Below are positions 1 through 64,000 of a DNA stretch of 64,000 nucleotides, one piece after another; the stretch's first letter is position 1, and every line of letters begins with the position of its first letter. The translations under genes and the position numbers were made by a program. The notes under the pieces were generated by a model, which made no database searches, was not told where the DNA came from, and was given only the letters and a program-made list of their open reading frames with translations. The DNA is taken from the sequence record MK268344.1. One strand, written 5' to 3'.

Positions 1-537
1 GAAATTACGGATATCAAAAAGAGAAATAATGAAATTCAAAACAACATTGATAAAAATAAAAATGAACAAGATTTGATTAATAAAAATCAAAATGTAAGTA
101 TTAAAAATAATACAAATGCAATTGAGGTTGAACGTGAAGAACGCAAGCAATCTATTTCTTCTGTAAATACAAAATTGAATAATCATGAATCACGTATTGA
201 ATCAAATACGCAAAGAATCAATACAGTGGAAAAAAGAACCAATGAATTTATGCATTCCACAAATAAACGTTTTTCTGAAATGAATAAAAAAATCGACGAA
301 AATCGTAAAATTTCCAGTGCTGGTATCGCTAGTTCCGGTGCAATGGCAAACATTCCACAATTATCTAAATATGGTGATTTTTCAATTGGGGCAGGTGTTG
401 GTGGATATGATGGTCAAGAAGCAATTGCAGTAGGTTTTAGTGCACGGATTTCTGAAAATGTATCAACTAAAGCATCAGTAAGTACTAATACTCAATCTGA
501 AGTATTGTGGGGTGCTGGTGTAGGAATTGAATGGTAA
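1..537 (+). CDS. YadA-type trimeric autotransporter adhesin, C-terminal coiled coil and membrane anchor (5'-truncated by window edge)
   Basis: Frame open from position 1; coiled-coil stalk then AGIASSGAMANIPQ...FSIGAGVGGYDGQEAIAVGFSARI...GAGVGIEW, a typical four-strand anchor ending in Trp. Confidence 0.9.
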   Translation, partial: EITDIKKRNNEIQNNIDKNKNEQDLINKNQNVSIKNNTNAIEVEREERKQSISSVNTKLNNHESRIESNTQRINTVEKRTNEFMHSTNKRFSEMNKKIDENRKISSAGIASSGAMANIPQLSKYGDFSIGAGVGGYDGQEAIAVGFSARISENVSTKASVSTNTQSEVLWGAGVGIEW

Positions 538-552
538 TATAATAAATGGGGG

Positions 553-581
553 TTGACATTGCCCCCAAAATTAAGTAAAAT
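553..581 (+). promoter_or_regulatory. sigma70-type promoter embedded in GC hairpin
   Basis: TTGACA(553-558)-17 nt-TAAAAT(576-581); -35 lies in the loop of TGGGGG...CCCCCA. Confidence 0.55.
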
Positions 582-669
582 GGGTACAGTCTTGGGCGTC
601 TAGTAAACTGGTGTTCATAACCAAGAACTTTAATGGAAAGATGTGGTTCGATTCCACGATGTACTCCCA
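582..669 (+). ncRNA. aberrant tRNA-like element (possible TCA anticodon)
   Basis: GGGTACA/TGTACTC acceptor-like stem followed by CCA, T-arm GTGG-TTCGATT-CCAC, TGGT-GTTCATA-ACCA arm, variable hairpin CTTT/AAAG; D-arm not canonical. Confidence 0.45.
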
Positions 670-685
670 AATTTATTGCAAAATC

Positions 686-716: not shown

Positions 717-759
717 AAAAGCATCGACGGATGTAAAACGTGATAACCGCTCTCAATGA

Positions 760-3065: not shown

Positions 3066-3461
3066 ATGTCATTTGATGATTTTGAAGTACACGCAAGACG
3101 TGAAATCCAAAATTATCTGGATGGAACGAATAGAGATTCTCGGTATTATGAAGTTCAATATAACCAAGTACTTAAACTTGAATGGACTTCTAAGCCAGAT
3201 ACTTCAGATGAAAAACTAATTATGTTTAATATTACATTGGAAAAGAACTTAAGTACGGTTCATTTCTCATTGCAAATAGATTATACATATGGTGAAGACG
3301 AAGATAATTTTTACACCGCAGGAAGAACAGATCTTCCACATAGTGAAGAAGAATATTTTCAAATGAGTACAGTACACGATTTAGGTTTCCGGTGGGAATT
3401 CTATCAGTACTTACTAAGTGTCTTCGAGCAGTTAAGAAAGAGAAATGGAAAAGAAACGTGA
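3066..3461 (+). CDS. EEEYFQ-family hypothetical protein
   Basis: SEEEYFQMSTVHDLGF motif. Confidence 0.75.
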   Translation: MSFDDFEVHARREIQNYLDGTNRDSRYYEVQYNQVLKLEWTSKPDTSDEKLIMFNITLEKNLSTVHFSLQIDYTYGEDEDNFYTAGRTDLPHSEEEYFQMSTVHDLGFRWEFYQYLLSVFEQLRKRNGKET

Positions 3462-12485: not shown

Positions 12486-13298
12486 ATGAGAAAAGACATA
12501 TTACAACAAAAAGAATTAATTCTTCAATTAATAGAAAAGAAAGCCCCTAAAAATGAGATTTGTAGAATTTTAAATTGTAAAACTACTACATTGGATTCAT
12601 ATCTAAAGAAAATGAATATTGAATATTCTGGTAACAAATCCAGAAAAGGGTTACAGAGAACTGAAAATTATAAAAATGTTGAAGAGTACCTATTCAATGG
12701 TAGTTCGATTCAATCTCATAAATTGAAATTGAAATTAATACGAGAAAATATATTTGAACATAAATGTCATAGATGTGGATTGCGTGAATGGGAAGGTGTA
12801 GAAATTCCATTAGAATTAGATCATATCGATGGTCAACATTTTAATAATGAACTATCAAACCTTAGATTATTATGTCCAAATTGTCATGCGTTAACTGATA
12901 CATACAGGTCAAAAAACCGAAGAACTGTTAGAACTAAAAAAGAAATAGAATCATTGGCAGAAGAAGTGTTTACGCGATTTGCTGATGATATAGAGAACAA
13001 TTCTATTGAGAAAGAATCAAAAGAAAAGAAACGAAAGATTACTAATATATGTAAAACATGTAATAAATCATATGAAAAATGTGGTAACATGAAAGGTAAG
13101 TATTTTTGCAGTGATGAATGTTATCGAAAATCATTACAAAAATTTGATATTACGTCAGAAGAATTAAGTAAATTAGTTTGGGAAATGCCTACTACTAAAA
13201 TAGCAGAAATATATAATGTTAGTGATGTTGCAATTTCTAAACGTTGTAAAAAATACGGTATTAAGAAACCACCACGTGGTTATTGGATGAAAAAATGA
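12486..13298 (+). CDS. HNH homing endonuclease
   Basis: CHRC...LELDHIDG...NNELSNLRLLCPNCHA; flanking HTH-like and Cys (CKTC...FCSDEC) DNA-binding modules; sits directly after tRNA-Leu. Confidence 0.88.
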   Translation: MRKDILQQKELILQLIEKKAPKNEICRILNCKTTTLDSYLKKMNIEYSGNKSRKGLQRTENYKNVEEYLFNGSSIQSHKLKLKLIRENIFEHKCHRCGLREWEGVEIPLELDHIDGQHFNNELSNLRLLCPNCHALTDTYRSKNRRTVRTKKEIESLAEEVFTRFADDIENNSIEKESKEKKRKITNICKTCNKSYEKCGNMKGKYFCSDECYRKSLQKFDITSEELSKLVWEMPTTKIAEIYNVSDVAISKRCKKYGIKKPPRGYWMKK

Positions 13299-16020: not shown

Positions 16021-16265
16021 ATATGAAAACCGATAAAGCTATTGAAAAGATGCGTCGTAATAAGCGTAATTGGACTATCCCTAAACTGAAAGTAATCGCC
16101 GCACGTTGTGGTATTTCGTGCGTGTCGAATGGTAGTACTCATCACGTTTTCAGGTTAGAGGGTGTTGTAGAACATTTGTCAATTCCATTCAATGGTAAGG
16201 ACATTCACCCTGATTATATAACTAAATTTCTACGCCTAATAGATAAGGCAACAGGAGAGAAGTAA
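16017..16265 (+). CDS. hicA: HicA-family mRNA interferase (dsRBD-like), no adjacent HicB
   Basis: DKAIEKMRRN...W...L...GI...GSTHHVF...LSIP...IHPDYITKFL; GAGGT RBS (ATG 16023). Confidence 0.7.
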   Translation: MNMKTDKAIEKMRRNKRNWTIPKLKVIAARCGISCVSNGSTHHVFRLEGVVEHLSIPFNGKDIHPDYITKFLRLIDKATGEK

Positions 16266-41845: not shown

Positions 41846-41852
41846 GGATAAT

Positions 41853-42080: not shown

Positions 42081-42091
42081 GGGGAAATATT

Positions 42092-42450: not shown

Positions 42451-42485
42451 AAAGGGTTGACTTCGGTCAGCCCTTTTGATATTAT
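42451..42485 (+). promoter_or_regulatory. fused terminator/promoter element
   Basis: AAAGGGTTGAC-TTCG-GTCAGCCCTTTT; TTGACT-17-TATTAT. Confidence 0.8.
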
Positions 42486-42515
42486 ATATGCATACCAACG
42501 AAGGAGATTAAGTAA

Positions 42516-46627: not shown

Positions 46628-46638
46628 TTTATTTCTCC

Positions 46639-49010: not shown

Positions 49011-49020
49011 CCCCTTCTCC

Positions 49021-50187
49021 TTATATTATTCTTGGTTGCATTGGAACTTTATTCCATTTGGTAAAATCTTCAGTTGACCCCGGTATCCATCTTGAATTAC
49101 CCACTGCATATACCGTATTTTCATGCCAATAATACACGTAATAACCACCTTGAACAACATGTGTTGGATCGAAGATAATATCTTGAAGAAAACCATTTTG
49201 CACTAAGGTTGAATATATTATTGTTGATGTATTACCTATTCCAAATCTACCATAGTAATCAGAACCAGAACTATATATAGATTCTGAAGTACAAAGATAA
49301 ATTGCTCCTTCACTGCAAAAACTATTTGTGTACTGAACAAATTTACTGGCTAATTCAGAATCAATTAATGTATTTTTTGTTAGTGTCGTGTAATAAGAAG
49401 ATGCAGTAGTCCCATCAGCACATAAACCATTACCACGAAACCCGCTCATATATACATCATTGCTTTCTGTAATAATCAAGACATTATTAGCACTTAAAAT
49501 AATGGTTTTTATTGGCAATGTAAACGGTACTTTATAGAATATAGGTTGCTCACTTGAAAATCCTAGACCTAAAGTTCCATATAAATTTCTTCCAGTACCG
49601 AAAAGTTCACCTGATGTACTAATATAAAATGAGGCATCACTTGATGAACTTAATGAACTATAAATTTCTTTCACACCACTAGCTACATGTTTAAATGATG
49701 CTGAAGGTGTAGTACCTAAACCAATATTACCGTACTGATTATTTGATGCATATGTTCCTTGACCAATAGCATAAAGCTGTTCATCTTGTAATAAAAATAA
49801 TCCTCTACTTCCAAACATTAATTTGGCTTTGTTTAAATCAAAGTTATTGAAAGTTGATGTTATTTCAGTAAATGTATTTAAATATCCAGATGATGCTCCC
49901 AATGATGCTCGATAACCAGTAAAAAACACTTTATTATTTTCAGTAATAATTAAAGTACAGTCAACACCAACATATATATCTTTTATATTTTCGATTGGAC
50001 ATTTTACCCATGTATTTTTGTTTACTAATGTTCCATCACCTAATTGACCACTTGTATTATCACCAGTACCAAATGCTTGACCATCATCAAATAGTACAAA
50101 AATAAATCCATAATACGAAACAACTTTTTTAATTTTAGTTTTTGGTAAAATATTACCATATGATATAATTCTTGGAAACGGAATCAT
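49021..50187 (-). CDS. MIPF-array protein: RCC1-like beta-propeller
   Basis: MIPFPRIISYGN; GTGDNTSGQLG, GTGRNLYGTLG. Confidence 0.82.
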   Translation of the reverse strand: MIPFPRIISYGNILPKTKIKKVVSYYGFIFVLFDDGQAFGTGDNTSGQLGDGTLVNKNTWVKCPIENIKDIYVGVDCTLIITENNKVFFTGYRASLGASSGYLNTFTEITSTFNNFDLNKAKLMFGSRGLFLLQDEQLYAIGQGTYASNNQYGNIGLGTTPSASFKHVASGVKEIYSSLSSSSDASFYISTSGELFGTGRNLYGTLGLGFSSEQPIFYKVPFTLPIKTIILSANNVLIITESNDVYMSGFRGNGLCADGTTASSYYTTLTKNTLIDSELASKFVQYTNSFCSEGAIYLCTSESIYSSGSDYYGRFGIGNTSTIIYSTLVQNGFLQDIIFDPTHVVQGGYYVYYWHENTVYAVGNSRWIPGSTEDFTKWNKVPMQPRII

Positions 50188-51341
50188 TTTATCTCCTTAA
50201 ATGTAGTACCCGGTGGGAATGATAATTCTTTAAATTGTACAGTTGCTGGAGTACTAGGATAACCAACAACAAAACGTTGTTGTCCACAAAAGAACATTTT
50301 ATTCTCATCGTACCATATACTTGATTCATTTCCAAAGTATCCTTTTACTTTAGAAGGATTTAACCCACTATTTCCTAGATTAGTTGTCCACAACCCAAGA
50401 TTATCATCATCTGTACCAGCCCCCATATAAGTAAGATTACCACTGAAGTATATAGTAGGATTATCACTATCTTTATTCATTGATACAAACGCATTAAATG
50501 TATTATTACTTGTACCCAAAATATAGCTATTATCAGGAGTAACCTTAGTAATATTTGGAAGAGGAATAAAGGTGTTACTTGAACTACCTCTACCGGTTGC
50601 CTGAGCACCAGTACTATATATAGTACCATCACTTAATACAATCCAAGTACTATTATTAGCGGAAGAAACACCATCAACTTTATCAAAATTATAAATGGAA
50701 TTTATGTTTGTCCAAGTATTAGACTGTGTTGTTCCATTATATCCAAGAGAACCTCCTTGATTCCATCCAGTACCAAATAAGATACCATTATTATCAATAT
50801 AAAAGGAATTATTACTACTTGATGTAACATACTTTACATTTGATGCGAGCTTTATGTAAGTGCGATGATCTGTTGTATTACCAGTACCTAATACTCCACG
50901 ACTGTTAGTATATGCTAAACCATATAAGTCATCATCTTCAGTAATTCCGAAAACAGTATTATTAGTTATACTGAATTTGACTATTGGCTTATTTCCACCA
51001 ACACCAATTAGATTTGTAATATCAACTGGTTCCTGTGTACCCCTTGTGTTACCAGTAAAAGCTATATCTCCTGCACCATAAATCGTATCACCTTTTCTAT
51101 AAGCAATACCACTATTCCATGAATCTATGATATCAGTAACTCCAGTATCAACCACTACATAAGATTTAACAGCAGAAGTTGAACCATCCCTACTGATTTG
51201 TCCATAACGATTGTATCCAGCACCCCAAAGTGTTCCGTCATACCATAAAATATAGGTGTCTAATGCGTGAGAAATTTTTCGAACTGCGGTAGGCTTTACA
51301 GCTTCATTTCCATATTTCATAATTCTTGCAAATGGTATCAT
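50184..51341 (-). CDS. MIPF-array protein: RCC1-like beta-propeller
   Basis: MIPFARIMKYGN; WGAGYNRYGQI, FGTGWNQGGSLG. Confidence 0.82.
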   Translation of the reverse strand: MIPFARIMKYGNEAVKPTAVRKISHALDTYILWYDGTLWGAGYNRYGQISRDGSTSAVKSYVVVDTGVTDIIDSWNSGIAYRKGDTIYGAGDIAFTGNTRGTQEPVDITNLIGVGGNKPIVKFSITNNTVFGITEDDDLYGLAYTNSRGVLGTGNTTDHRTYIKLASNVKYVTSSSNNSFYIDNNGILFGTGWNQGGSLGYNGTTQSNTWTNINSIYNFDKVDGVSSANNSTWIVLSDGTIYSTGAQATGRGSSSNTFIPLPNITKVTPDNSYILGTSNNTFNAFVSMNKDSDNPTIYFSGNLTYMGAGTDDDNLGLWTTNLGNSGLNPSKVKGYFGNESSIWYDENKMFFCGQQRFVVGYPSTPATVQFKELSFPPGTTFKEIK

Positions 51342-52039
51342 ATTTGAACCTCCCTCATCTTAATATATTGTATCCTACCTTTGAATAAAACCGGATTAGC
51401 ATTATTATCACCATCAACATATGAACCAAATAAACTAAAATACTGATTAACAGGAGATAATATTTGATACCACGGAAATGTTTGTGTTTCATTAAAAAGT
51501 TCAGAATGTACTGTAATAGAAATACCTTTTCTAAATTCCATTTTTATGGTATCCCAAGCATTGGGGTTAGCCCATGTAGGAAGTACTCTGGCATAATTAT
51601 TTCCCCAATCTATGAATACTTGATTATATGTAGAACTATATTGGTTGAATGCATTAACAAAACCCGATATTCTTCTGGAATTATAATTACCAGTTTCAAA
51701 TAACGCTTGTCCTCCGATTGGTGAACATTTCATTCTATATTCTATGTCAAATGCATTATATAGACTGAAGTCCAATTTGGTTCCTTTTACCGGATTTAAA
51801 GTTCTAAAATAAGCACTACTATTTGTACAATCTAATACATTAGACCCAATTTCATCATCATATACCACAGTTCCTGCGACGGGATTAATTGTACCGATTT
51901 GTGAACGTTGTAAAAATTGATTACCTGCTCTATCAGGAACGCCCGTACTACCAATTTCTTGAGTACTGTAATCTACATCAAGTATCATTTTTTCAGGAGC
52001 GATATTCCCGTATGTTAATATCTTTGAAAAAGGTATCAT
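51338..52039 (-). CDS. MIPF-array protein: LamG/lectin-like beta-sandwich
   Basis: MIPFSKILTYGN; FDIEYRMK...LFETG...WDTIKMEF...FKGRIQYIKM. Confidence 0.7.
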   Translation of the reverse strand: MIPFSKILTYGNIAPEKMILDVDYSTQEIGSTGVPDRAGNQFLQRSQIGTINPVAGTVVYDDEIGSNVLDCTNSSAYFRTLNPVKGTKLDFSLYNAFDIEYRMKCSPIGGQALFETGNYNSRRISGFVNAFNQYSSTYNQVFIDWGNNYARVLPTWANPNAWDTIKMEFRKGISITVHSELFNETQTFPWYQILSPVNQYFSLFGSYVDGDNNANPVLFKGRIQYIKMREVQI

Positions 52040-52110
52040 ATATCCCCCATAATTCTTGTAATTATACTATATTTAATTAAAAAAGGCCAGTACTAGTATT
52101 GTACTGGCCT
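52032..52110 (-). repeat. cassette junction repeat type A (terminator + TAAATA + RBS + start); copies at 57716-57792 and 61268-61342
   Basis: GGTATCATATATCCCCCATAATT..TGTAATTATACTATATTTAATTAAAAAAGGC.AGTAC nearly identical at three junctions. Confidence 0.85.
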
Positions 52111-52115
52111 TTTTA

Positions 52116-53237
52116 TTATTTCCAAGGCATTTTTTCATCGGCAAGTCGAGTAAGCCTATTGTAAAATGAAATTCCATTTATTGGTGTATTACCACATACA
52201 AACATATCATCGTTATTATCAATAACCATTGAAAATAAATTATCACCACCAAAGGATACAATATTAGATACTGTACCAAATATCATTGGTGTAAGTGTAG
52301 CTTGTGCTGACGAAGCTGCACCATTACCACATTGTCCATATATATTAAATCCACAACGCCATATTTGATTGTTAATCCATATCATCGGTGACATACCCGC
52401 ACTATTTGATAAAGAACCAATTACTCTTAATGGTACAGAAGGATCAAATTGAGTACGGATCTGTACTGAATTAAGTACTGGATTCGTATTACCAACAGAA
52501 CCTTGACCTTGCGTGTTAATTGATGCAGTTCGTATAGAACCATCTTTCATAAAATAATATGTTGTATAAAATGTATTAGCAGTGTACAATACATCATCCA
52601 ATGTTTTTGTAAATGTAGGTACTGAGGTTGGCGTAGTACCAGATAACATCATCGTTCCTGCATAATAACAGCTTCCATCACTTAATATTAAACAGGTTGT
52701 ATTAAATCCACAGGACATGTACTGAACGTTTTCGATTGAACTATATGTGAATTTAGTAACACTAGCAGAACTACCAGTACCGAAACACCCCGCACTATTG
52801 CTTCCATAAAAGAACCATTTTCCATTATTCAATAATACTCTAATACCTTCAGCAATGTAAACACTTTTTATATCATCTGGCGATACCCCAAAATCTGAAA
52901 AGTACTTCGTTACATTAACAAAGGATCTTGTATTTTGTGCTATTGGCATACCATATGTACTTCCAGTGTACCACATTATATTATCTTCATCTATAGCCAG
53001 TGTTCCATGTACACCACCGAAATATCTTTTCACTCTGGTTAATACCTTAGTCCACGATGATAGGTTCGTTGTATCACCAGTTCCTAATTGACCCAAGTTA
53101 TTCTGTCCAATTGCATATAGATCACCATTACGGTGTAAATACCATGCTGCACTGTAATTTACCTGAACTCGTTCACCCAATATAGTCGGTGCTTTAACTT
53201 CATTGCCATAACTTAATATTCTTGTAAATGGTATCAT
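52116..53237 (-). CDS. MIPF-array protein: RCC1-like beta-propeller
   Basis: MIPFTRILSYGN; LYAIGQNNLGQLGTG, CGFNIYGQCG. Confidence 0.82.
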   Translation of the reverse strand: MIPFTRILSYGNEVKAPTILGERVQVNYSAAWYLHRNGDLYAIGQNNLGQLGTGDTTNLSSWTKVLTRVKRYFGGVHGTLAIDEDNIMWYTGSTYGMPIAQNTRSFVNVTKYFSDFGVSPDDIKSVYIAEGIRVLLNNGKWFFYGSNSAGCFGTGSSASVTKFTYSSIENVQYMSCGFNTTCLILSDGSCYYAGTMMLSGTTPTSVPTFTKTLDDVLYTANTFYTTYYFMKDGSIRTASINTQGQGSVGNTNPVLNSVQIRTQFDPSVPLRVIGSLSNSAGMSPMIWINNQIWRCGFNIYGQCGNGAASSAQATLTPMIFGTVSNIVSFGGDNLFSMVIDNNDDMFVCGNTPINGISFYNRLTRLADEKMPWK

Positions 53238-53259
53238 TATTATTCCTCGATTATTTTAA

Positions 53260-54429
53260 TTACATTGGCAATACCAACGGAAGTACTGAACCAATACCAT
53301 ATGTTGGAACATTACTTTGTATTGTTGGTGCTGTATTTTTTGGTGAAGATGTGGCTATATTAGGAAAAGATGAAGATGGATTAAACAATACTATATTACC
53401 AGAACCACTCATAAGCATCAACCCATCGTATTTCTCATTTTGTGCACATTTCTCGAATGTTCCAATGTCAACTGTAGAATTCACATAGTTTTTACTTCTA
53501 TGTCCACAACCATATATTTCATTATCAACTGTCATGTAATATGATACGCTTCCTGAACTCGTATTAATAAATTTAAAATAGCTACGGAAATTAGCTGGTA
53601 GAATTGGTAATGTTCCTGATACGAATCCATAAAACCCACTATTAGTATTACCATTACCCAACGAACCATATGATCCCCATCCAGTTCCGTAATATGTCCC
53701 ATCAGATAAAAAAATTATACAATTGTTATTGCACATTTTAATTTGATTGATTTTTTGAACATCCACACCCGGAAATGATTCAGTAAATGTTAATACATTA
53801 GAAACACTACTTGCATTACATTGGTTTTGTGTATTACGTCCAGATGATAGTACTGTGCCATCTTCTAAGATAATTCTTGCTGCTCCAGTACCAGACATAC
53901 ATGCTACCGCATTTGATGAATTAAACAATTTCTTTAACGAAAAAAAACCAACATTGGCTTTCCCTTGACCTGACCAACCTTCTGTATCAGTACCAATACC
54001 CCACACCGAACCATCATTATGAATAAGCATAAGACCATTTCTATCAATATTAATGTATTTTATCTCATTAATATCTATTCCGACAAAACTAGATGTAACG
54101 TCAATCCATGTATTCGAAACTGTTACAGAACTTTTCAATACGTTGTGACCAGTTAACATAACTTTACCAGTACTTGTAATATATATTGTTTGTGAAAAAC
54201 CAGTACTACATAACCTAACTTCATCAACTTCGGGAACCATAATCCACTCATTAAATGAATTTGTGTTATTTCCAGTACCCAATTGACCATTGGCATTACT
54301 ACCAGACAAATATAACTTTTCATTGTAAATCAATGAATACGTTTCACTATATTCTGAAGTACTCAATAAAATTGATTTTGGTATTGGTGGGGTATTTCCA
54401 TATAACATGATTCTAGCAAATGGTATCAT
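53260..54429 (-). CDS. MIPF-array protein: RCC1-like beta-propeller
   Basis: MIPFARIMLYGN; SGSNANGQLGTG, SGRNTQNQC. Confidence 0.82.
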   Translation of the reverse strand: MIPFARIMLYGNTPPIPKSILLSTSEYSETYSLIYNEKLYLSGSNANGQLGTGNNTNSFNEWIMVPEVDEVRLCSTGFSQTIYITSTGKVMLTGHNVLKSSVTVSNTWIDVTSSFVGIDINEIKYINIDRNGLMLIHNDGSVWGIGTDTEGWSGQGKANVGFFSLKKLFNSSNAVACMSGTGAARIILEDGTVLSSGRNTQNQCNASSVSNVLTFTESFPGVDVQKINQIKMCNNNCIIFLSDGTYYGTGWGSYGSLGNGNTNSGFYGFVSGTLPILPANFRSYFKFINTSSGSVSYYMTVDNEIYGCGHRSKNYVNSTVDIGTFEKCAQNEKYDGLMLMSGSGNIVLFNPSSSFPNIATSSPKNTAPTIQSNVPTYGIGSVLPLVLPM

Positions 54430-54472
54430 ACATTCTCCTTATTTGTACAATTATATTATATTTAATTAAAAA
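54413..54472 (-). repeat. 60-bp exact direct repeat (cassette junction type B), second copy 55682-55741
   Basis: CTAGCAAATGGTATCATACATTCTCCTTATTTGTACAATTATATTATATTTAATTAAAAA identical in both. Confidence 0.9.
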
Positions 54473-54513
54473 AAGGCCAATACTGTATCAGTACTAACCG
54501 ACATTTAATTTAA

Positions 54514-55698
54514 CTATAATTTCCACGGCAATTGCATTAGAGATTGAAAATATCCATTAAAAATATCATTTGTTAAACAAGTTGGGTTCGTGTTTTTCCC
54601 GCAGCCCAAAATAATATTTTCATCCCTGCATATATATCCATTATAATAATTACATATAATAATATCATGTTCTTTGCAAATTATATCAGGAACTATAGTG
54701 TATGTACCTATATATTGGGGTGATGTTCCTAAACCCAACGCATAATTATAATTATTTCCAGTACTATATAATCTATTATTAATATCAACATACATGGAAA
54801 CGCCACTATGCATTGTATATACTTTACCAAAATAATTATAATCATTACATGAATTCGGTAATTCCACGGTGATCATATTACCTGATGTATTTTGATTCGT
54901 ATTCGTTGTATTTCCATCACCGAATGCCCCGGCTGAATTCGTACCAATACAATATGCTGTTGACTTAGTATACGCAATCGTATTGTTAGTAGACATCCTA
55001 ACCTGAAGTATAGGTTCACTTACAGTACTAAACATTCGATGAAAACGAACAATATTCTCATTATTAATGCCACCCTCAGTACTGGTTTTTATACAATATG
55101 ATGCATTCCTGCCAGCACCCCACACTGTCCCGTCTTTTTTAATATATACACTATTTTGTGAAGTAATAGAACAATCTTCAACATCAGTATCTATCAATGT
55201 CAATGGGAAATATCCAGTACTACCAACACCTAATTCACCATAACGATTAAGTCCAATACCATAAAGTTCACCATTGTTTAATAATACAAATGTATTATTC
55301 TCAGGAACTATTTTTTTAATATCTGATATATTAATAGAACTAAACAAGTTAGAGATATCAGTAAATGTCGTATACCCTGATGCTGTACCACTGTTATTCT
55401 GAATTGCTCGATCGCCTGATAAAAATATTTTATCATCATGCGAAATATATATAGTACTTCCAATCCCATTAGTACATAACTTAATATCCGATTCTGGTAT
55501 TTTAAATAAAGATCTAGGTCTATCTGATTTATGACCCAACCCCAATTGACCATATGCGTTATACCCACCAACATAGGCATCGCCGGTGCTTAATAAAATA
55601 CTATAAGAAACATTAGAACTAAAACTTAAATTCATTTGTTTGATATATGGTATTTCTCTTATATTACCGTATGTCAATATCCTAGCAAATGGTATCAT
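54514..55698 (-). CDS. MIPF-array protein: RCC1-like beta-propeller
   Basis: MIPFARILTYGN; GGYNAYGQLGLG, GLNRYGELG. Confidence 0.82.
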   Translation of the reverse strand: MIPFARILTYGNIREIPYIKQMNLSFSSNVSYSILLSTGDAYVGGYNAYGQLGLGHKSDRPRSLFKIPESDIKLCTNGIGSTIYISHDDKIFLSGDRAIQNNSGTASGYTTFTDISNLFSSINISDIKKIVPENNTFVLLNNGELYGIGLNRYGELGVGSTGYFPLTLIDTDVEDCSITSQNSVYIKKDGTVWGAGRNASYCIKTSTEGGINNENIVRFHRMFSTVSEPILQVRMSTNNTIAYTKSTAYCIGTNSAGAFGDGNTTNTNQNTSGNMITVELPNSCNDYNYFGKVYTMHSGVSMYVDINNRLYSTGNNYNYALGLGTSPQYIGTYTIVPDIICKEHDIIICNYYNGYICRDENIILGCGKNTNPTCLTNDIFNGYFQSLMQLPWKL

Positions 55699-55775
55699 AC
55701 ATTCTCCTTATTTGTACAATTATATTATATTTAATTAAAAATGACAGTACTACATAAGTACTGTCATTTTTCTTA

Positions 55776-56579
55776 TTATGTAGTTGTGCCTACATTACTT
55801 GTGGGAAATCTACGACCACCTCCCCAAATAATACGCACACCACCCAATCCTTCATCAGTACTTGTATTACCAGCACCACGATATATGGTTGTACCCGGAA
55901 CCGCACTACCTGAACTACCACGATAATGTGCAGCAGAACCACGTCCAGATTCACCCATACCAAATAAACCAACTGCACCACCAGAAGCAGCTATTCCGCC
56001 CCCTCCTCCACCACCACCAGCACCAGAACTGCCAGATGAACTACTTGCACCATTACCACCATTACCTTCATAGCCACCAGCACCACCTGAGCCGCCTCTT
56101 TCATATCGATAAGTACCAGAAGTCGGGCCACTACCACCTCTACCACCATCGCCGCCGCCATCGTTTATTTGACTGGCATTCTTTCCACCAACACCTCCTG
56201 ACCCACCGGCACCACTAGACATTGTAGTACCATAACTGCCCATTTTTCCACCACCAGCAATGCAAGCATTTGAGTTATTTTGTAATACATAAGAATTTCC
56301 ACCATCAGAATTGGCTGTATAACCATTTACACCAACTGTAACTGATAGTACTTCACCGGGAGTTACCGCTACATCATTCCTATAACTTAAACCACCACCA
56401 CCGCCACCACCCCCAGTACTTCCAGTGCCAACCCTACCACCACCGCCAACACATAATATACATATAGATTCAACATCATCTGGTACTATAAACTCAAATG
56501 TTCCAGATTGAACCCAGACCATTTCCCCTTTTGGTGGTAATTTATTTCCGTATGTTAGCATTTTTGTAAATGGTATCAC
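55776..56579 (-). CDS. MIPF-array protein: glycine-rich tail-fibre-like domain
   Basis: GTG start, MIPFTKMLTYGN; SGTFEFIVP...VGGGG...VTPGEVLSVTVG...GGGG...GGVRIIW. Confidence 0.8.
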   Translation of the reverse strand: MIPFTKMLTYGNKLPPKGEMVWVQSGTFEFIVPDDVESICILCVGGGGRVGTGSTGGGGGGGGLSYRNDVAVTPGEVLSVTVGVNGYTANSDGGNSYVLQNNSNACIAGGGKMGSYGTTMSSGAGGSGGVGGKNASQINDGGGDGGRGGSGPTSGTYRYERGGSGGAGGYEGNGGNGASSSSGSSGAGGGGGGGGIAASGGAVGLFGMGESGRGSAAHYRGSSGSAVPGTTIYRGAGNTSTDEGLGGVRIIWGGGRRFPTSNVGTTT

Positions 56580-56589
56580 GATTGTCTCC

Positions 56590-57723
56590 TTAATTAATTC
56601 TTATTTTAGTAAAAATATTATTTTCTGAACCATCAGATTTTTTTCCCGGTAAAACACTAATACTTCCAACTCCCCAAATATCATTTCCATCAAATATTAA
56701 AGAATAAAAAGTTCCACCCAAAATCTGTACTTTTTTGTTATCTTGTACTGTTGTAAATTTAGGAATTTCTTTAAAAATAGAGGATGCCTGTGGTAAGCCA
56801 CTATATTCAACTAGACCCGTTGCATAAAATGTACCGTTAGTACCTAAAAATATATTTCTGTTTGGTGTACCCTTTAACTTTCCTCCAATAACCATTTGGG
56901 ATGGCATGTTTATTTTGGTTGACCAAGATTTAAGCTGAGTATTTAAATTTACACCGTCACCTAATATCCCATTAATTTGCCAACCAGAACCTGCTATTGT
57001 CGTTGGTGTCCAATATGATAATGTACTAGCACGTGTTGCCATAAAGGATGATGTGCCACCATTAAGTATTATCCCCCACGTATACTTATTTTCTGAATTA
57101 CCAGAACCAAATTGACCATAAGGCTGTTGTCCCGCTCCATACAAATATACGGAAGTGGGTGAAATTCCACGAGCTATCATAGAATAGTCTCCAACATATA
57201 ATTCTTGATGGTAAGTAGTACCAACTCGCGTAAATGAACTTATCCGATTTGTAGATCCTAGACCACACGCCCCATTACTATTCCAACCTCTTGAATATAA
57301 TTGATTGTCGATATCAATATATCCCATAGTGTATAAACCAATATCTAATTCTTTCACCGAATCATAAGATGGCATAGTATTAGTTATATCATCACCTTCT
57401 ATTGGAGATAATCCACCAGTAGTATTCTTGGTTCCTAATACATCATAGTTTCCATTAAAAATCCATTTTCCATCCTTAGTATATATTAATGTACTCTTAG
57501 AACCACACCAAACATCTTCTGCATTTCTATCCAGTACTACAAACTCGTAGTACTGATATGTTGCTGTGCAATCCTTTAACTGATTAGAATTGTTATAACC
57601 AATACCATATAGTAATCCACTTTCCATTAATACCACATAATGTGTATCACCACATGATATTTTCTTTATATTACTTGGTACAACTACATTACCATATCCC
57701 AATATCCTCGCAAATGGTATCAT
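56590..57723 (-). CDS. MIPF-array protein: RCC1-like beta-propeller
   Basis: MIPFARILGYGN; ISCGDTHYVVL, RGWNSNGACGLG. Confidence 0.82.
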   Translation of the reverse strand: MIPFARILGYGNVVVPSNIKKISCGDTHYVVLMESGLLYGIGYNNSNQLKDCTATYQYYEFVVLDRNAEDVWCGSKSTLIYTKDGKWIFNGNYDVLGTKNTTGGLSPIEGDDITNTMPSYDSVKELDIGLYTMGYIDIDNQLYSRGWNSNGACGLGSTNRISSFTRVGTTYHQELYVGDYSMIARGISPTSVYLYGAGQQPYGQFGSGNSENKYTWGIILNGGTSSFMATRASTLSYWTPTTIAGSGWQINGILGDGVNLNTQLKSWSTKINMPSQMVIGGKLKGTPNRNIFLGTNGTFYATGLVEYSGLPQASSIFKEIPKFTTVQDNKKVQILGGTFYSLIFDGNDIWGVGSISVLPGKKSDGSENNIFTKIRIN

Positions 57724-57797
57724 ATATCCCCCATAATTCATGTAATTATACTATATTTAATTAAAAAAGGCTAGTACGCACTTGTACTAGCCATCTC

Positions 57798-58943
57798 TCA
57801 ATTAATAGATTTAATATCAACTTCTGCACCCAATGACAATTTAGTAAAGGTAGTTGTATCTTGACTTAAGGAAGGAAAAGAAGAACCACTATACCAAATT
57901 GTATTTCTAGTTATTATCATAGTATTAGTTGAATTAGCACATATTCCAATTATATCATTAAGTACTAACTCATCTGGTAAATTAATAATTGTCTTATTTT
58001 GGGGCGTAACCTTATTACCTAAACCCAATTGTCCACTTGTATTATTTCCAGTACAATATAAATCATTATTCACACTAAAAAATGTACCATAACGTGTTAA
58101 TATAGAATATGGATGATTGAAAAACTTATTAGCACCAACCATACTATACAAACTCGTAATACCAATTTGGGCTGTACTTCCATTACCCATGCAATAATAA
58201 GTACCTAATCCCGCTCCATATATCCAACTTTGATTAATAGACATAACCGCCGATGGCATTAAACTCCATGAAATGTTAGAAGTTCTAGGAGCAGAAGCAA
58301 CTTGTACTTCATTCGGCGTAGGTGATGTTCCAAGCATCGATGGTGCATTACCAAAACCACAGATAACATCATATGCACTGAACCATTTTCGATAAGCCGT
58401 TATGCCATTATAAAGCTGTACATCTTTAACCCTAGAAACCATTAAAGTAGGTACTGATAACATTCCATTTAAGGCAACCTTATTACTTAAACTATAAGTA
58501 CTATTCCTACCAACCATATATAAATCACCATATGTGCGATCAGTCGAATTCGGTATTAAATAAGCCATGTTGTTTAAAGTAGCTGTAATGTTATAAGCAT
58601 CACTAGGAATAGTAAAGGGAAGTTTGGTAAAACTATATACATTACTATTAAGCCCTAAACATGTGCGGTTGCCAGATATATAGTACTGACCATCATTTCC
58701 TTGAATGATCACACTCATATCAGTAGCACATACCACTTTTTTAATATTACCTGCAATCAATCTCCATTCAGATAATGGTGCAGAATCACCAGTACCCAAT
58801 TGACCCTGACTATTATCCCCTAATGCAAATAAATTACCAATAGAATCTATATATAATGCAAAATAATTCAATCCACAGAATTGAACTATTTTTGCATCCG
58901 GTAATGTGTTCCCATAATCCAATATCCTAGCAAACGGTATCAT
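57798..58943 (-). CDS. MIPF-array protein: RCC1-like beta-propeller
   Basis: MIPFARILDYGN; LGDNSQGQLGTG, TGNNTSGQLGLG. Confidence 0.82.
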   Translation of the reverse strand: MIPFARILDYGNTLPDAKIVQFCGLNYFALYIDSIGNLFALGDNSQGQLGTGDSAPLSEWRLIAGNIKKVVCATDMSVIIQGNDGQYYISGNRTCLGLNSNVYSFTKLPFTIPSDAYNITATLNNMAYLIPNSTDRTYGDLYMVGRNSTYSLSNKVALNGMLSVPTLMVSRVKDVQLYNGITAYRKWFSAYDVICGFGNAPSMLGTSPTPNEVQVASAPRTSNISWSLMPSAVMSINQSWIYGAGLGTYYCMGNGSTAQIGITSLYSMVGANKFFNHPYSILTRYGTFFSVNNDLYCTGNNTSGQLGLGNKVTPQNKTIINLPDELVLNDIIGICANSTNTMIITRNTIWYSGSSFPSLSQDTTTFTKLSLGAEVDIKSIN

Positions 58944-60136
58944 ATCTCATCCTCCGGTCTAAATCCAGTTGGTCGTACAAAAAAGTATTGGGCTGTTGTA
59001 TATCCCGGTATCGTATAATTAGAACTATCTCCCGCTGCCAAAAAATTATTTCCGTAAGAATAATATAATGCATTACGATTATAATTAATTAGTTCAGCAG
59101 AAGGTTCAATACCACTCCAATAAAAATATCTTTGATATGTATTATTACCCACACCAAAAGCTCCACTAGCATTACTAGCACTGAAATAATACCCATAAGC
59201 AGCACCACTGCTCTTATCAATACGTTGCATTAGTATCGCCGGGTACATTGGATCACCACTACCACCAAACATTTTACCTTTATATTCCAAATCAAATCCA
59301 GAATCATCACGCATTATAACTTCAGAAAAGGTAAGTACCGAACCATCAGCAGATGCGTTTTTATTAAATGCACCACCACCTGCACCACATGCATATAACT
59401 TGTTAGTACTAGGTGAATATAACACTGCTCCCGTTCTACATACCGCAAATACATCATCAAAGGATGTGTATAAATCTGAAACTCCAGCAGGTAGTACTAT
59501 CGGCTTAGGTAGTGTGATTGTAGATGTATTCTGGGAAACTCCTATGTAAGAACCGTTACCCGCTGCATATATTTTCGAATCACCTCTAATAACAAATAAA
59601 CAATTGTTATCATTATTCACAAAATCTACAACATCTCGGTATATTAGTGTGAATTTATTATAAGTCGTCGATGTAGAAGGTGCTAATAATTGTCCATTAC
59701 TATTCATCCCAATAGCATACAAATCACCACTCGTACTTAAAATGTATATAGCTCTCCATGCTACCTGTACTTTCTTTATTTTATCCAATGCAATAACATC
59801 AGTAATTAATGAAGTTATATCTAAATTGGTAAATGTTATATTACCACTAATCCCAAGAGTCCCACTAAAACCACTATAGACGTATTTTTCCGCTTTGGTT
59901 TTATAAAGGGAACCCCATCCACCTAACCAACAATCATCTACATCAGTAGCCATCAACGCTTTTCCATCCCTGCCACTGATTACCTCACCATATGCAGGCA
60001 AACCAAATGAATATAAATTCCCACTCCCACCTAAAACCATAGTACTGCTATAATTGCAACAAATTTTTTTGTACTTACTTACGTCTGGCTCAGGTGCAAT
60101 ATTCCCATAACTCAATATCCTTGCAAATGGTATCAT
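58940..60136 (-). CDS. MIPF-array protein: RCC1-like beta-propeller
   Basis: MIPFARILSYGN; LYAIGMNSNGQL; GGGAGG RBS fixes start. Confidence 0.8.
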   Translation of the reverse strand: MIPFARILSYGNIAPEPDVSKYKKICCNYSSTMVLGGSGNLYSFGLPAYGEVISGRDGKALMATDVDDCWLGGWGSLYKTKAEKYVYSGFSGTLGISGNITFTNLDITSLITDVIALDKIKKVQVAWRAIYILSTSGDLYAIGMNSNGQLLAPSTSTTYNKFTLIYRDVVDFVNNDNNCLFVIRGDSKIYAAGNGSYIGVSQNTSTITLPKPIVLPAGVSDLYTSFDDVFAVCRTGAVLYSPSTNKLYACGAGGGAFNKNASADGSVLTFSEVIMRDDSGFDLEYKGKMFGGSGDPMYPAILMQRIDKSSGAAYGYYFSASNASGAFGVGNNTYQRYFYWSGIEPSAELINYNRNALYYSYGNNFLAAGDSSNYTIPGYTTAQYFFVRPTGFRPEDEI

Positions 60137-61275
60137 ATTTCCTCCCACGGTAATTTAACTTTCTTATACTCAATCGTTTCATTTATACTTCCATCACCTA
60201 ATATCCATCTACCATCACCTGATTGATACATCTCTTCATCTGTATATAAACAAGATGTAAGATTCGATGAAGATAACCCAATGACCTTAGAAAAATCAAT
60301 ATTCAACGTACATTTCGTAAATCTTCCAATGCCAGTTTCACCACCATATGCAGTACCAAAAATTCCCGTTTTATATCCAGTACTGTATACTCCAGTATCA
60401 CTAACAAAAGCCATATTAAATATACCATTTCCTCGATGGATTGGCCTTAAATTACTCGTATCACCACTATAGGACACAATCTGATAATATAATTGATTCA
60501 CGTGCGTTGTACTTACATTACCATTACCTAATTGACCATATATCTGATTACCAGCCGATGAAAGAGATTTGTTGATATTAAAATACATACTTGAACTATA
60601 ACCAGTTCCAACCATCAATGCATTCTGTGTGAAAAACATTGGGCTTCTAATTGCATTATTATTACCTAATCCAAATTCACCATTAGCATTTCTACCCCAT
60701 ACGTACATATCACCATTGTTGCATAACGCAACTGCACTTCCCGCCGCTGTTGTATATTGAATGTAATTAACGTCAGTTATTCCCTGAACCTCGGTCAGTA
60801 CTGATAACGAACCAGAACCAGATATTCCACTATTCACATTACTATTTGAACCAATTGCATATATATTTCCATTAATATCTTTAAAATGTAACATCTGTTG
60901 ATGACAAAATACGTCAACAATAGTAGAAGGATCAATAGAACCAAATTCAAATAACATTCTTACCCAACTACTAGCAGTATCATTTATACCACCTAATCCT
61001 GTATACCAAAAAGTACCATCACTCTTCTTGATTAAGGTATAATTCCCATATACCCATACATCAAAAACATTTGTCATGATCTCAACACTTCTTCCATAAT
61101 ATGATACATTAGTATTAGTAAAACCTAATTGATTATAATTGTTAGTTCCACATCCCCATAATACACCTTTACTATCCAGTATTACAAAATGAGTACTGCC
61201 AAATTGTGCTTTTTTTATAGTTCTCTTAAACGAAACAATGTTCCCATAATCCAATATCCTCGTAAATGGTATCAT
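60133..61275 (-). CDS. MIPF-array protein: RCC1-like beta-propeller
   Basis: MIPFTRILDYGN; VWGRNANGEFGLG, AGNQIYGQLG. Confidence 0.82.
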   Translation of the reverse strand: MIPFTRILDYGNIVSFKRTIKKAQFGSTHFVILDSKGVLWGCGTNNYNQLGFTNTNVSYYGRSVEIMTNVFDVWVYGNYTLIKKSDGTFWYTGLGGINDTASSWVRMLFEFGSIDPSTIVDVFCHQQMLHFKDINGNIYAIGSNSNVNSGISGSGSLSVLTEVQGITDVNYIQYTTAAGSAVALCNNGDMYVWGRNANGEFGLGNNNAIRSPMFFTQNALMVGTGYSSSMYFNINKSLSSAGNQIYGQLGNGNVSTTHVNQLYYQIVSYSGDTSNLRPIHRGNGIFNMAFVSDTGVYSTGYKTGIFGTAYGGETGIGRFTKCTLNIDFSKVIGLSSSNLTSCLYTDEEMYQSGDGRWILGDGSINETIEYKKVKLPWEEI

Positions 61276-61348
61276 ATATCCCCCATAATCTCTTATTATA
61301 ATATATTTAACCAAAAAAGGCCAGTACTATCACTGTACTGACCTAACT

Positions 61349-62473
61349 TTAGTTTGTTGGTAAAATCATCGGCCTTAATGCCGCTGTATCATCTTTTCCC
61401 GGTAAAAATTGTAAATTAGCACCAGATATATAAAATCCAGTACTGTTCTTATATACATAATGATTAAATCCACCCTGTACCTTATCAAATATTTCACTAT
61501 ACATAAATCTAAACGAATTAACTACACCCACTACACCATTTACATCAAACTGCTGACCTAATACATATAAACCACTCTGTAGACCCTGTACTTCCGGTGG
61601 TATAACAACAACTACTCCCCTTGTATTATATGAACATACCATATTACGTGCCGTAACTAAATCAGTACTAAAAGATAATATACGCTGAAAATCACTAATC
61701 GTACCATTCGGTGTATTACCTCGTATATATATACCATCCGTCCTTATCGCAATTACAACATAATCTCCACAATGGATATTTTGTGAAGTTAACGTGGCTT
61801 GAGTATATACATTATAAGTACTCGTCGAGGTATTCGCAACCTGCTTAAATGAATTATTACCAACAGCTAATATGTTAGAATTCACAGTAGTAATAAAACA
61901 ATTAAATGCACTCGCACTTATAGACATAATCGTTTTCGGAGCAGTACTACATAACGCTAAAGCATAGTGTGCAGGTGTATTATTTCCTTGCCCTAATGTC
62001 ACCCCTTTTCCCTGAGAGTATAAAGCACCATAATTAGAATCAGATATCCTTCCAACTAATACCATCATACTATTATCATTCACTTGTATGTCCTTTATGT
62101 AGCAATCAGCGTATTCATATATAGTACTAATATCCGGGATTATTAATGTGAATTTAGTATACGTCCCATTATCATTTCCTGTATATAAGGTATTCTTACC
62201 ACTTAAATATATCGAATTGCCTTTTCTTATTAATACCGCATATGATGCCATACCAGTGTAAACTTCATCAACTCCTGTATCACACCGAACCCATTCATTA
62301 CGGGTCTCTGTATCACCTAACCCCAATTGCCCCAATGCATTATCCCCTGTACTATAAAGAACTTTATCAGTACTTAATGCATAGAACGATTGTGAACCAA
62401 CATATGTCGAAATTATTGAGGATGGTAAGGGGGCTTTATTCCCGTAATCCAATATCCTAGCAAACGGTATCAT
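61349..62473 (-). CDS. MIPF-array protein: RCC1-like beta-propeller
   Basis: MIPFARILDYGN; STGDNALGQLGLG. Confidence 0.8.
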   Translation of the reverse strand: MIPFARILDYGNKAPLPSSIISTYVGSQSFYALSTDKVLYSTGDNALGQLGLGDTETRNEWVRCDTGVDEVYTGMASYAVLIRKGNSIYLSGKNTLYTGNDNGTYTKFTLIIPDISTIYEYADCYIKDIQVNDNSMMVLVGRISDSNYGALYSQGKGVTLGQGNNTPAHYALALCSTAPKTIMSISASAFNCFITTVNSNILAVGNNSFKQVANTSTSTYNVYTQATLTSQNIHCGDYVVIAIRTDGIYIRGNTPNGTISDFQRILSFSTDLVTARNMVCSYNTRGVVVVIPPEVQGLQSGLYVLGQQFDVNGVVGVVNSFRFMYSEIFDKVQGGFNHYVYKNSTGFYISGANLQFLPGKDDTAALRPMILPTN

Positions 62474-63669
62474 ATATTATCCTCTCTTAAATTAAAATCT
62501 GTTATTAATGTAAAATTCTCAGATAATGGTGTACTTAATGGCGTAAATCCAACACCAGCACTTGTTGTTAACCCCGAACCCTTTGCATATAGTAACGGGG
62601 ACATATTCAATGCACAAAGAGCAAACATCCTCGTATTTGTATAAGCCCTATATGTGTTCCCATTGCCCTGTACTGTATATCTTGGCGTGAATGTGAGAAG
62701 ACGATCTCCACCACCTCCATCCATATAACCCGCAAAATATAGTACACCATTAGTATCAGATAGGATATTCGTCCAATACGTCTGGATGGATGTCCCAAAT
62801 AGTGATAATAAATTACCCGGCTTAAATGCTAATTGTGCAGTATATAACCGAACATTCGCATCTACACTAATATTACCTATCCCCCACGCACCAGCATAAT
62901 TTCTTCCTGAACAATAATATTTTCCGTCCGTCCTAAAAAGCATAAAATGTGTTTGACTTATACGAAATGCATTATATTCATAATCTACCTCAGACGTAGC
63001 CTCAGAAAATAATTGTGTCCATGTAGTATATACAGTACTTTGAGATGTAGTCTGCATCTGTTGATAAGTGTTATCTCCAGTACCCCAAAATGTTCCATCC
63101 AAATCCTGATATACTCCATTAATATTCGTTATCCAACAATCCTGTACTGACGATTTTAATAGTACTGGCGTGAAACTAGGAGTTTTATTAGCACTACCAA
63201 AGTAACCATAATCGTTTTTTCCATGTGCATATAATGAACCATCATTCAACAAAATATAAACTGTGTTGTAATTCATTGTTATTTTCTTAATCTTTAATAT
63301 ATCAAAATACGTAGAATAAAATGAAGTCTTATCAACCCATGTGGCTGTATTACTAGTACCATCATATATCGTCTGACGACCTGTATAAAATAATTTATCA
63401 TCATTCGATAATACAAACGTTCCATATGTACTACCCCATGCAGTCTTTACATCCCTCTTAACTAAATGCATCTCACCATAGTAATTTACACCAACTGGAA
63501 AACCCAAAACATATCCATAATTCTTATCACAGGTTCCCCATAACTCTCCATTATTCAAATGCATCCACATCGTCGCTGCGGTATTATCCGAATCCAAAAA
63601 GAAGTCAATCACTTTTGCGGGTGCTGCTACCTTATTCCCATACTCTAATATCCTAGTAAATGGTATCAT
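62470..63669 (-). CDS. MIPF-array protein: RCC1-like beta-propeller
   Basis: MIPFTRILEYGN; HGKNDYGYFG, GTGDNTYQQM; TAAATA at 63699-63704. Confidence 0.8.
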   Translation of the reverse strand: MIPFTRILEYGNKVAAPAKVIDFFLDSDNTAATMWMHLNNGELWGTCDKNYGYVLGFPVGVNYYGEMHLVKRDVKTAWGSTYGTFVLSNDDKLFYTGRQTIYDGTSNTATWVDKTSFYSTYFDILKIKKITMNYNTVYILLNDGSLYAHGKNDYGYFGSANKTPSFTPVLLKSSVQDCWITNINGVYQDLDGTFWGTGDNTYQQMQTTSQSTVYTTWTQLFSEATSEVDYEYNAFRISQTHFMLFRTDGKYYCSGRNYAGAWGIGNISVDANVRLYTAQLAFKPGNLLSLFGTSIQTYWTNILSDTNGVLYFAGYMDGGGGDRLLTFTPRYTVQGNGNTYRAYTNTRMFALCALNMSPLLYAKGSGLTTSAGVGFTPLSTPLSENFTLITDFNLREDNI

Positions 63670-64000
63670 ATTATCCCCCTATAATTATCATTATATCATA
63701 TTTACCCATATATATACCCTTTTTAATATATTAGAAAACTCTATAGTACTACCATATATACACCATATAAACGCATAGAAAGCCATAAGAGAAGACTTCT
63801 CCAATATTATACACAGGTGTAGCTCCTGTAGATAGCGGCTCTTAGACGCTTATCGAAAGGATTCAACACCTGTAAAAATACCCAATTGTTAATATGTACA
63901 GTACTTTTACTTTTAAAATTATTCAGGAAATAGTTACACATTGAACTATATTAGTAAGTACTAATGGAAGCTACTATTCAGTACTTACCCCCTTCCGCTA

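Follow-up and report, generated by a model that had tools for sequence, protein, structure and literature searches.

AGTACT in the genome of phage Munch

The DNA analysed here (the window, 64,000 nucleotides in all) matches Salmonella phage Munch, MK268344.1, at 100% identity over positions 286104-350103. It forms the right-hand 64 kb of the record of this jumbo myovirus, which has a genome of 350,103 bp. Dispersed along the whole window (1..64000) are 174 copies of the palindrome AGTACT, or 2.7 per kb, 160 of them in open reading frames (ORFs), where all three frames are used, and 14 between genes. The guanine-plus-cytosine (GC) content of the window is 34.5%. ORFs were called mechanically, and the remainder of the record was retrieved so that the statistics could be repeated genome-wide; coordinates below are those of the window unless marked as record positions. 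Munch carries T4-like core genes, and its major capsid protein groups it with the RaK2-like jumbo phages. That protein is 100% identical to those of phages 7t3, SE_PL, PHA46 and fENko-Kae01, 96% identical to that of Erwinia phage Hallingskeid, 92-93% to those of Eneladus-, Mimas- and Asteriusvirus, and 78% to that of RaK2.

The abundance of AGTACT had been pointed out in an initial annotation of the sequence, and all 18 positions listed there are exact AGTACT sites. Its zero-order estimate of about 2 per 6 kb was also sound, the order-0 expectation being 21.8 per 64 kb. The 174 sites of the window compare with 16.2 ± 3.8 (maximum 27) in 100 dinucleotide-preserving shuffles, and AGTACT is the most frequent hexamer of the window, the runner-up having 116 copies. 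Observed/expected ratios are 8.0, 10.7, 5.5 and 2.6 under Markov orders 0, 1, 2 and 3, and at each of these orders the z-score of AGTACT is the highest of the hexamers. At order 4 the ratio is only 1.1, because the pentamers AGTAC and GTACT, which set the expectation, share the excess; this value does not refute the excess. AGTACT is likewise the commonest hexamer of the whole genome, with 850 copies where 98-118 are expected (98-183 under Markov orders 0-2 and 368 under order 3). This is 8.7 times the order-1 expectation, against 1.9 times for the second most enriched palindromic hexamer.

Correction for coding content leaves the excess in place. When synonymous codons were shuffled within each gene, the ORFs of the window were expected to hold 42.2 ± 5.6 sites rather than 160, and whole-codon permutation gave 23. 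The sites fall in different reading frames and in genes of both strands (104 in plus-strand and 56 in minus-strand genes of the window), as had been described, and each frame exceeds its synonymous shuffle by 3.5-5.3 fold: Ser-Thr 83 against 23.8, (K/Q/E)-Tyr 21 against 4.0, and Val-Leu 56 against 14.4. Intergenic DNA of the window, with 14 sites in 5.1 kb, has the same density as coding DNA, and an intergenic excess is also found in the Munch genome outside the early region described below (26 sites in 18 kb). Across the 552 ORFs of the genome, 770 sites compare with 208 ± 12.7 after synonymous shuffling (z = 38.9), which places AGTACT first of 4096 hexamers; the next ranks are held by words that overlap it. 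Neither outcome that the initial annotation had named as speaking against the excess, its loss on correction for codon and di-codon usage or an enrichment no greater than that of other AT-matched hexamers, was seen.

It might still be argued that the excess arises artefactually from base composition, codon or dicodon usage, amino-acid content, or repeated or paralogous sequence. Codon permutation gives fewer sites than synonymous shuffling (23 versus 42), and therefore the amino-acid sequence does contribute part of the count; some early-promoter cassettes are, moreover, repeated. Set against this are the z-score of 39 that survives synonymous shuffling, the first rank at Markov orders 0-3, a comparable fold-excess in all three frames together with an excess between genes, and the lack of an excess in relatives with similar GC content. 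The flanks of AGTACT are diverse, no 10-mer context occurring more than five times, which rules out inflation by repeats or paralogues, and the Markov models, synonymous shuffling and codon permutation likewise rule out an artefact of composition or of codon and dicodon usage. This explanation can be given almost no weight.

The motif itself is compact. Flank analysis found no longer consensus around AGTACT: at position -1, C is favoured 1.76-fold and G disfavoured (0.65-fold), position +1 mirrors this, and a hidden longer motif was dropped as a possibility because the preference is limited to C/A at -1 and G/A/T at +1. In the matrix of NGTACN words, a single good half (AGTACN or NGTACT) is enriched 1.5-2.3 fold and the full palindrome 7.2-fold, which is about the product of the two half-site enrichments; GGTACC and CGTACG have zero copies in the Munch genome. 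The surplus of one-off variants (summed observed minus expected) is 568 for positions 1/6, 148 for positions 2/5 and 113 for positions 3/4. The recognised unit is therefore a GTAC core plus a preferred outer A...T pair. From this unit and its multiplicative half-sites we infer a two-fold symmetric, phage-encoded protein that reads AGTACT on duplex DNA. All six transition neighbours of AGTACT stand at or above expectation (observed/expected 1.05-3.4); this argues against a product of very-short-patch-type repair, for which a depleted neighbour word is predicted.

Along the genome the sites are spread evenly. Outside the early region, which covers the first 21 kb, there are 13-35 per 10 kb throughout; counted in 1-kb bins they follow a Poisson distribution closely, with slightly less scatter than random placement would give (variance-to-mean ratio 0.83). 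The mean spacing is about 400 bp, and each long gene holds at least one site. The metagene profile is flat except for dips at ribosome-binding sites and stop codons, which rules out a link to gene boundaries.

The early region (record 1-21000), with 56-67 sites per 10 kb, is the exception. It consists of about 55 small ORFs, each behind a repeated sigma-70-type promoter cassette, and the cassettes sort into a few near-identical families. They carry two AGTACT sites 20-23 bp apart that flank the -35 element: the first adjoins it (AGTACTTGACA / AGTACTTGCAT), and the second lies 7 bp upstream of TATAAT. These cassettes are reminiscent of the mobile ones known from T4-type phages. They account for about 35-40 of the 850 sites (<5%) and occur in early cassettes of the Munch group only, and no association of AGTACT with promoters was seen among the RpoD-like promoters tabulated for phage CBB. 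Because so few sites are involved and the CBB promoters lack them, we treat the association as a trait of the repeated early cassettes of the Munch group and not as the cause of the excess. A general role as a promoter element is rejected for the same reasons, the fixed -35/-10 spacing being confined to those 35-40 sites and the metagene profile being flat elsewhere.

Sites are also present at both record ends. The left end (record 1-1300, annotated as non-coding) has 16, mostly as (C)CAGTACTGA, and no other 1 kb of the genome is as dense in sites as the first of the record. The non-coding right end (63745..63985) has four.

Spread among relatives and turnover of sites

Relatives were compared over the syntenic 25-kb block around the capsid gene. 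In the blocks of the enterobacterial RaK2-like phages, AGTACT is in large excess throughout (observed/expected: Munch 37/7.1, Hallingskeid 68/8.9, Serratia BF 45/7.5, GAP32 51/7.6, 121Q 47/7.7, CBB 56/8.0, RaK2 48/6.0). The more distant relatives that infect Vibrio (2.275.O, 4/7.4), Pseudomonas (PA5oct, 0/9.1) and Agrobacterium (Atu_ph07, 3/2.9) are without excess, and Salicola phage SCTP-2 (12/5.5) has a weak one of about 2-fold. In the 25 kb of PA5oct, the count of 0 against 9.1 expected makes it appear that AGTACT is avoided there, though enriched in the enterobacterial clade. No excess is present in two large phages that share these hosts but are unrelated, a T4-like phage of Klebsiella (6/7.8) and a Kuttervirus of Salmonella (2/7.1), which rules out a general host-driven trait. 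The AGTACT excess is thus a trait of the enterobacterial RaK2-like clade, comprising the Munch group, Asteriusvirus, Mimasvirus, Eneladusvirus and Alcyoneusvirus.

Individual sites turn over heavily within this clade. Alignment of 13 orthologous genes from the seven phages (16,956 columns, 64-70% nucleotide identity) gave 115 distinct AGTACT positions, of which 78 occur in one phage only and 2 are common to all seven; some gains altered amino acids. Retention is nevertheless above that of frame-matched control hexamers (376 of 1181 conserved versus 235.5 expected, about 1.6-fold), a modest effect, AGTACT ranking 10 of 99 same-composition hexamers. The closer pair of Munch and fENko-Kae01 (aligned over 46.8 kb at 2.16% divergence) differs at 4 of the 120 Munch sites, as against 13.6 for control hexamers, and nine sites occur in fENko-Kae01 only. 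The 12 point differences between the two phages are of many mutation types, 8 of them at positions 1 or 6.

To judge from these alignments, the deep clade comparison excludes neutral decay of an old AGTACT excess: every lineage has a 5- to 8-fold excess and the positions are mostly lineage-specific, so that continued gain is required. Such gain means that density is under selection or that repair is directed. What persists is the density of AGTACT, about one per 400 bp, and not its individual positions, and the level on which the excess operates is duplex DNA, not codon, peptide or RNA. AGTACT looks like a maintained genome-wide mark. The initial annotation had proposed a selected genome-wide tag and listed several functions for it. 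That the tag is a DNA-level, genome-wide and maintained feature is borne out by the codon and Markov corrections, by the intergenic sites, by its presence in the Munch group and four or more genera besides in spite of the turnover of positions, and by its contrast with the purge of other palindromes; none of the listed functions is singled out by these results.

Palindrome avoidance, candidate partner genes and other features

Most other restriction-type palindromes have been purged from the Munch genome to an extreme degree, and AGTACT is the lone exception. GCGC has 0 copies in the 350 kb, where 190-346 are expected, and is also at zero in all seven enterobacterial RaK2-like phages (25-50-kb samples), as against 19-41 copies per 25-kb block in the Vibrio, Pseudomonas, Agrobacterium and Salicola relatives. 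Twenty-two of the 64 palindromic hexamers are missing, among them AAGCTT, CAGCTG, CCATGG, CTGCAG, GGTACC, CTCGAG, GAGCTC and GTCGAC, and four more are present at one or two copies. Several hexamers that contain CCAGG have zero copies in Munch ORFs. Restriction-site avoidance does not extend to AGTACT, which is over-represented 8.7-fold. E. coli K-12, sampled over 50 kb, has 3 AGTACT and 327 GCGC; the AGTACT density of the phage is about 40 times that of the sample, and GCGC is found on the host side only. Most restriction enzymes have been reported not to cut RaK2 DNA, which was attributed to methylation in the RaK2 paper; missing sites may account in part for the restriction-resistant DNA reported in this group.

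Other word biases were noted in passing. TAAATA and TATTTA are 3-4 fold under-represented in ORFs relative to the synonymous shuffle (69 versus 238 and 50 versus 211), a deficit that would fit avoidance of the late-promoter-like word ATAAATA inside genes. The host Chi word (GCTGGTGG) is enriched in Munch, with 28 copies versus 2.6 expected; 20 are on the plus and 8 on the minus strand (1.3 expected on each), and the early region holds 12 of the 28. In the window it occurs at 33842 (+) and at 30651, 56014, 56074 and 56251 (-), and an inverted Chi pair, CCACCAGCTTAAGCTGGTGG, lies close to the left record end (record 484-503).

The only recognisable DNA methyltransferase of Munch is CPT_Munch_090 (record 41720-42250), a Dam-family (PF05869) N6-adenine enzyme with syntenic homologues in Asteriusvirus (66%), K64-1 (56%) and Eneladusvirus (43%). 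A motif-IV scan for other methyltransferases gave two more ORFs, both without methyltransferase homology. The gene that follows CPT_Munch_090 is small and annotated as a nucleotidyl- or cytidyltransferase, the two together spanning record 41720-42779, and annotations of relatives have the same methyltransferase and cytidyltransferase pair in the matched region. CPT_Munch_326 (record 225593-226300), annotated as 'type II restriction endonuclease', was considered as a partner of AGTACT and rejected, having a Cas4/MGME1-like PD-(D/E)XK exonuclease fold. Its matches are limited to the PD-(D/E)XK_1 and Cas4 models, the nearest solved structure is the exonuclease MGME1 (E about 3e-4), and neither profile nor structure matches gave a sign of a site-specific enzyme. 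Among the nucleases and methyltransferases of Munch, no specificity could be tied to AGTACT. The phage also encodes topoisomerase II subunits, gp46/47-like nuclease subunits, endonuclease VII and several HNH nucleases.

On the minus strand of the window, an array of about 16 similar-sized tandem ORFs (45497..63669) is annotated as 'DNA condensation protein'. It holds 53 AGTACT sites (2.9 per kb, an ordinary density). The three array ORFs that were tested are RCC1-repeat beta-propellers (Pfam RCC1/PF25390, phrog_4219), and the label looks like an annotation artefact derived from 'regulator of chromosome condensation'. The array was accordingly dropped as an AGTACT binder, RCC1-repeat propeller proteins lending no support to a DNA-organising role.

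That annotation also placed AGTACT in the terminator stems of the array, which holds for three hairpins between minus-strand paralogues, with stems built of CAGTAC/GTACTG. The hairpin at 52085..52109 (stem GGCCAGTAC / GTACTGGCC, flanked by A- and T-runs) lies between two RCC1-repeat paralogues, has AGTACT at 52089 in its stem and looks like a bidirectional terminator. That at 55737..55771 (AAAAATGACAGTACT-ACATA-AGTACTGTCATTTTT) has AGTACT in both arms (55746 and 55757), and the 86-nt segment that contains it has a fold energy of -29 kcal/mol. A degenerate copy of the same type lies at 61319..61343 (GGCCAGTAC / GTACTGACC, AGTACT at 61323); all three are on the minus strand. A similar terminator is present in phage CBB.

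Two HNH domains next to tRNAs had been described as free of AGTACT, which was held to be consistent with recent acquisition. One HNH domain stands: the HNH endonuclease gene at 12486..13298 (+), the sole Pfam-confirmed HNH domain in the window, has 27.7% GC and zero AGTACT. A further candidate (3445-4056) has no Pfam match. The argument for recent acquisition is statistically weak, 0 sites comparing with about 2.2 expected in the confirmed gene (P about 0.11); the three annotated HNH genes of the genome and the unconfirmed candidate together have 2 sites in 2.56 kb versus about 6 expected. Elsewhere in the window, a hypothetical protein (8516-9205, +) has an ART-PolyVal ADP-ribosyltransferase domain (E 1e-10), and the BCS1_N and AAA domains of the 'mitochondrial chaperone' (16265-17500, +) make it a BCS1-like AAA ATPase. 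The record of a relative has 'virion structural protein' and 'tail protein' in the region of the first 20 kb of the window.

Candidate explanations and what the mark may mean

AGTACT is best described as a genome-wide iterated palindrome that is kept abundant, and we favour, with a probability of roughly 0.45, its use as a methylation-linked self-mark. A genome purged of most restriction-type palindromes could presumably not afford 850 unprotected ScaI-type sites, and since other restriction palindromes have been removed while AGTACT stands, the sites are most likely shielded. The putative shield would be methylation of GTAC or AGTACT by a DNA methyltransferase of the phage. With AGTACT about 40 times denser than in the host, its methylated form would give phage DNA a sequence-encoded mark, which could serve in protection, in repair or the discrimination of strands, or in distinguishing the phage genome from that of the host, and would work like HIP1, the highly iterated palindrome of cyanobacteria (GCGATCGC), with its cognate orphan methyltransferases.

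Several observations weigh against this proposal. Protection accounts for tolerance of AGTACT and not for its enrichment. Characterised members of the Dam family are known to act on GATC or to be non-specific, and no AGTACT-binding protein was found among the Munch candidates. Phylogeny and host range are confounded, every trait-bearing phage infecting Enterobacterales. Taken alone, the comparison of Munch with fENko-Kae01 could also reflect an old excess that decays neutrally, which would give about 16-17 differing sites where 13 were seen.

The likeness to HIP1 and the alternate HIPs is close in several respects. These, too, are short palindromes far above expectation that occur in all frames of ORFs and between them; AGTACT sites, like HIP1 sites, are conserved above controls; and the one-off variants are skewed to the outermost bases, leaving an inner core that is CGATCG in HIP1 and GTAC in AGTACT. 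Both selection and methylation-linked biased repair have been proposed for HIP1 (PMC5861425, PMC4390886). Unlike HIP1, which is an octamer of cellular chromosomes with fold-excesses of 15-300, AGTACT is a low-GC hexamer of a virus with a fold-excess of 7-11, and it sits in a genome that otherwise purges palindromes. HIP1 has cognate orphan methyltransferases, whereas Munch has the one syntenic Dam-family enzyme, whose specificity cannot be read from its sequence. HIP1 shows long-range periodicity of 10-90 kb in cyanobacteria; the distribution of AGTACT was examined at short range.

A rather unlikely competitor is that AGTACT is the site of a dimeric, non-enzymatic phage DNA-binding protein, with no chemical mark involved. 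Such a protein might organise or compact the nucleoid, coat phage DNA and so shield it, or act as a regulator that also turns early promoters off, and the sites would be tolerated because ScaI-type enzymes are rare in the hosts or because bound protein occludes them. A palindrome with multiplicative half-sites fits a symmetric dimer. Also in favour of this reading are the even spacing of about 400 bp, the two fixed places in the early cassettes, whose separation of 20-23 bp has the geometry of an operator pair, and the left non-coding end with its 16 sites in 1.3 kb. A candidate protein was not found, the array annotated as 'DNA condensation protein' being no DNA binder, and the promoter association, which concerns under 5% of sites and is missing from the RpoD-like promoters of CBB, is not clade-wide. 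We regard as less probable still a non-adaptive origin by biased repair or gene conversion, as in Elhai's model for HIP sequences, in which mismatch repair dependent on (methylated) GTAC resolves towards AGTACT and replenishes the sites with no benefit to the phage. Heavy positional turnover at stable density would follow from this, and so would the gains that change amino acids; one-off variants skewed to outer positions have been reported for HIP1 as well (PMC4390886), and 8 of the 12 point differences between Munch and fENko-Kae01 lie at positions 1 or 6. Counting against it, no neighbour word is depleted, all six transition neighbours being at or above expectation, the differences between close relatives span many mutation types, and retention is 1.6 times that of frame-matched controls; no Vsr-like gene is annotated either, which is weak evidence as it concerns annotation only.

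Two further proposals fare worse. AGTACT could be the preferred cleavage or nicking site of a phage enzyme, for instance a T4-type topoisomerase II, whose cut would be A|GTAC|T with ends staggered by 4 bases, or else a nickase or endonuclease with site specificity; the resulting breaks would serve decatenation, recombination-dependent replication or packaging of a 350-kb genome. A symmetric 6-bp site with a 4-bp core would fit the geometry of type II topoisomerases and endonucleases, the sites are evenly spread, and Munch encodes the topoisomerase, gp46/47-like, endonuclease VII and HNH proteins listed above. No nuclease can be linked to AGTACT, the supposed restriction endonuclease CPT_Munch_326 is a Cas4/MGME1-like exonuclease, and we know of no genome that enriches topoisomerase sites in such a way; this proposal is improbable. 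Very improbable is service to a host protein of Enterobacterales such as SlmA, possibly to block cell division. The idea arises from the SlmA consensus, GTGAGTACTCAC, which has AGTACT at its centre, and from the host range of the trait-bearing phages, all of which infect Enterobacterales. The SlmA site of E. coli is a 12-bp palindrome in which G1, T2, A4 and G5 are needed (PMC3020112). The phage sites share the central AGTACT and lack the needed flanks, disfavouring G at -1 (0.65-fold) and C at +1; the GTR flank is found at 18 of 850 sites versus 26 expected, and there is one full SlmA site in 350 kb. With unrelated large Klebsiella and Salmonella phages free of the excess, an SlmA site is largely refuted.

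Symmetric enzymes and methyltransferases for this site or its core exist in nature, as the ScaI and RsaI/CviQI systems. The specificities of ScaI (AGT^ACT; PMC8919816) and of RsaI/CviQI (GTAC) are identical to the motif and to its core, respectively, although no homologue was identified in Munch and the targets of restriction-modification systems are not normally enriched. Of phage restriction-site avoidance Munch shows the classical pattern in extreme form, with GCGC and 22 of the 64 palindromes absent, and AGTACT, at 8.7 times the order-1 expectation, runs opposite to it. Chi, DNA uptake sequences and other genomic signal words are short and dense genome-wide, as AGTACT is, and are read by a DNA-processing machine; they are asymmetric, 8-12 bp long and dependent on orientation or strand, whereas AGTACT is a 6-bp palindrome with no polarity.

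As far as the literature on AGTACT in phages and on RaK2-like jumbo phages is searchable, we found no prior description of this excess. Palindrome avoidance has its textbook example in phage genomes, yet here a restriction-type palindrome tops the hexamers of a 350-kb genome and of its clade. The excess implies a reader of the DNA, be it a methyltransferase, a binding protein or a repair activity, and makes AGTACT a small, tractable viral counterpart to HIP1. Several members of the clade are candidates for phage therapy or biocontrol, and the excess is a simple sequence signature by which further members can be spotted in metagenomes. More speculatively, and on balance doubtfully, phages that have neither the base-replacement chemistry of T-even phages nor a phiKZ-like protein nucleus may write their identity into the sequence itself, positively as an AGTACT every ~400 bp that a phage factor would read or methylate, and negatively as the absence of GCGC and many other palindromes. 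If this is true, phage enzymes could tell phage from host DNA for protection, destruction of host DNA, transcription and packaging.

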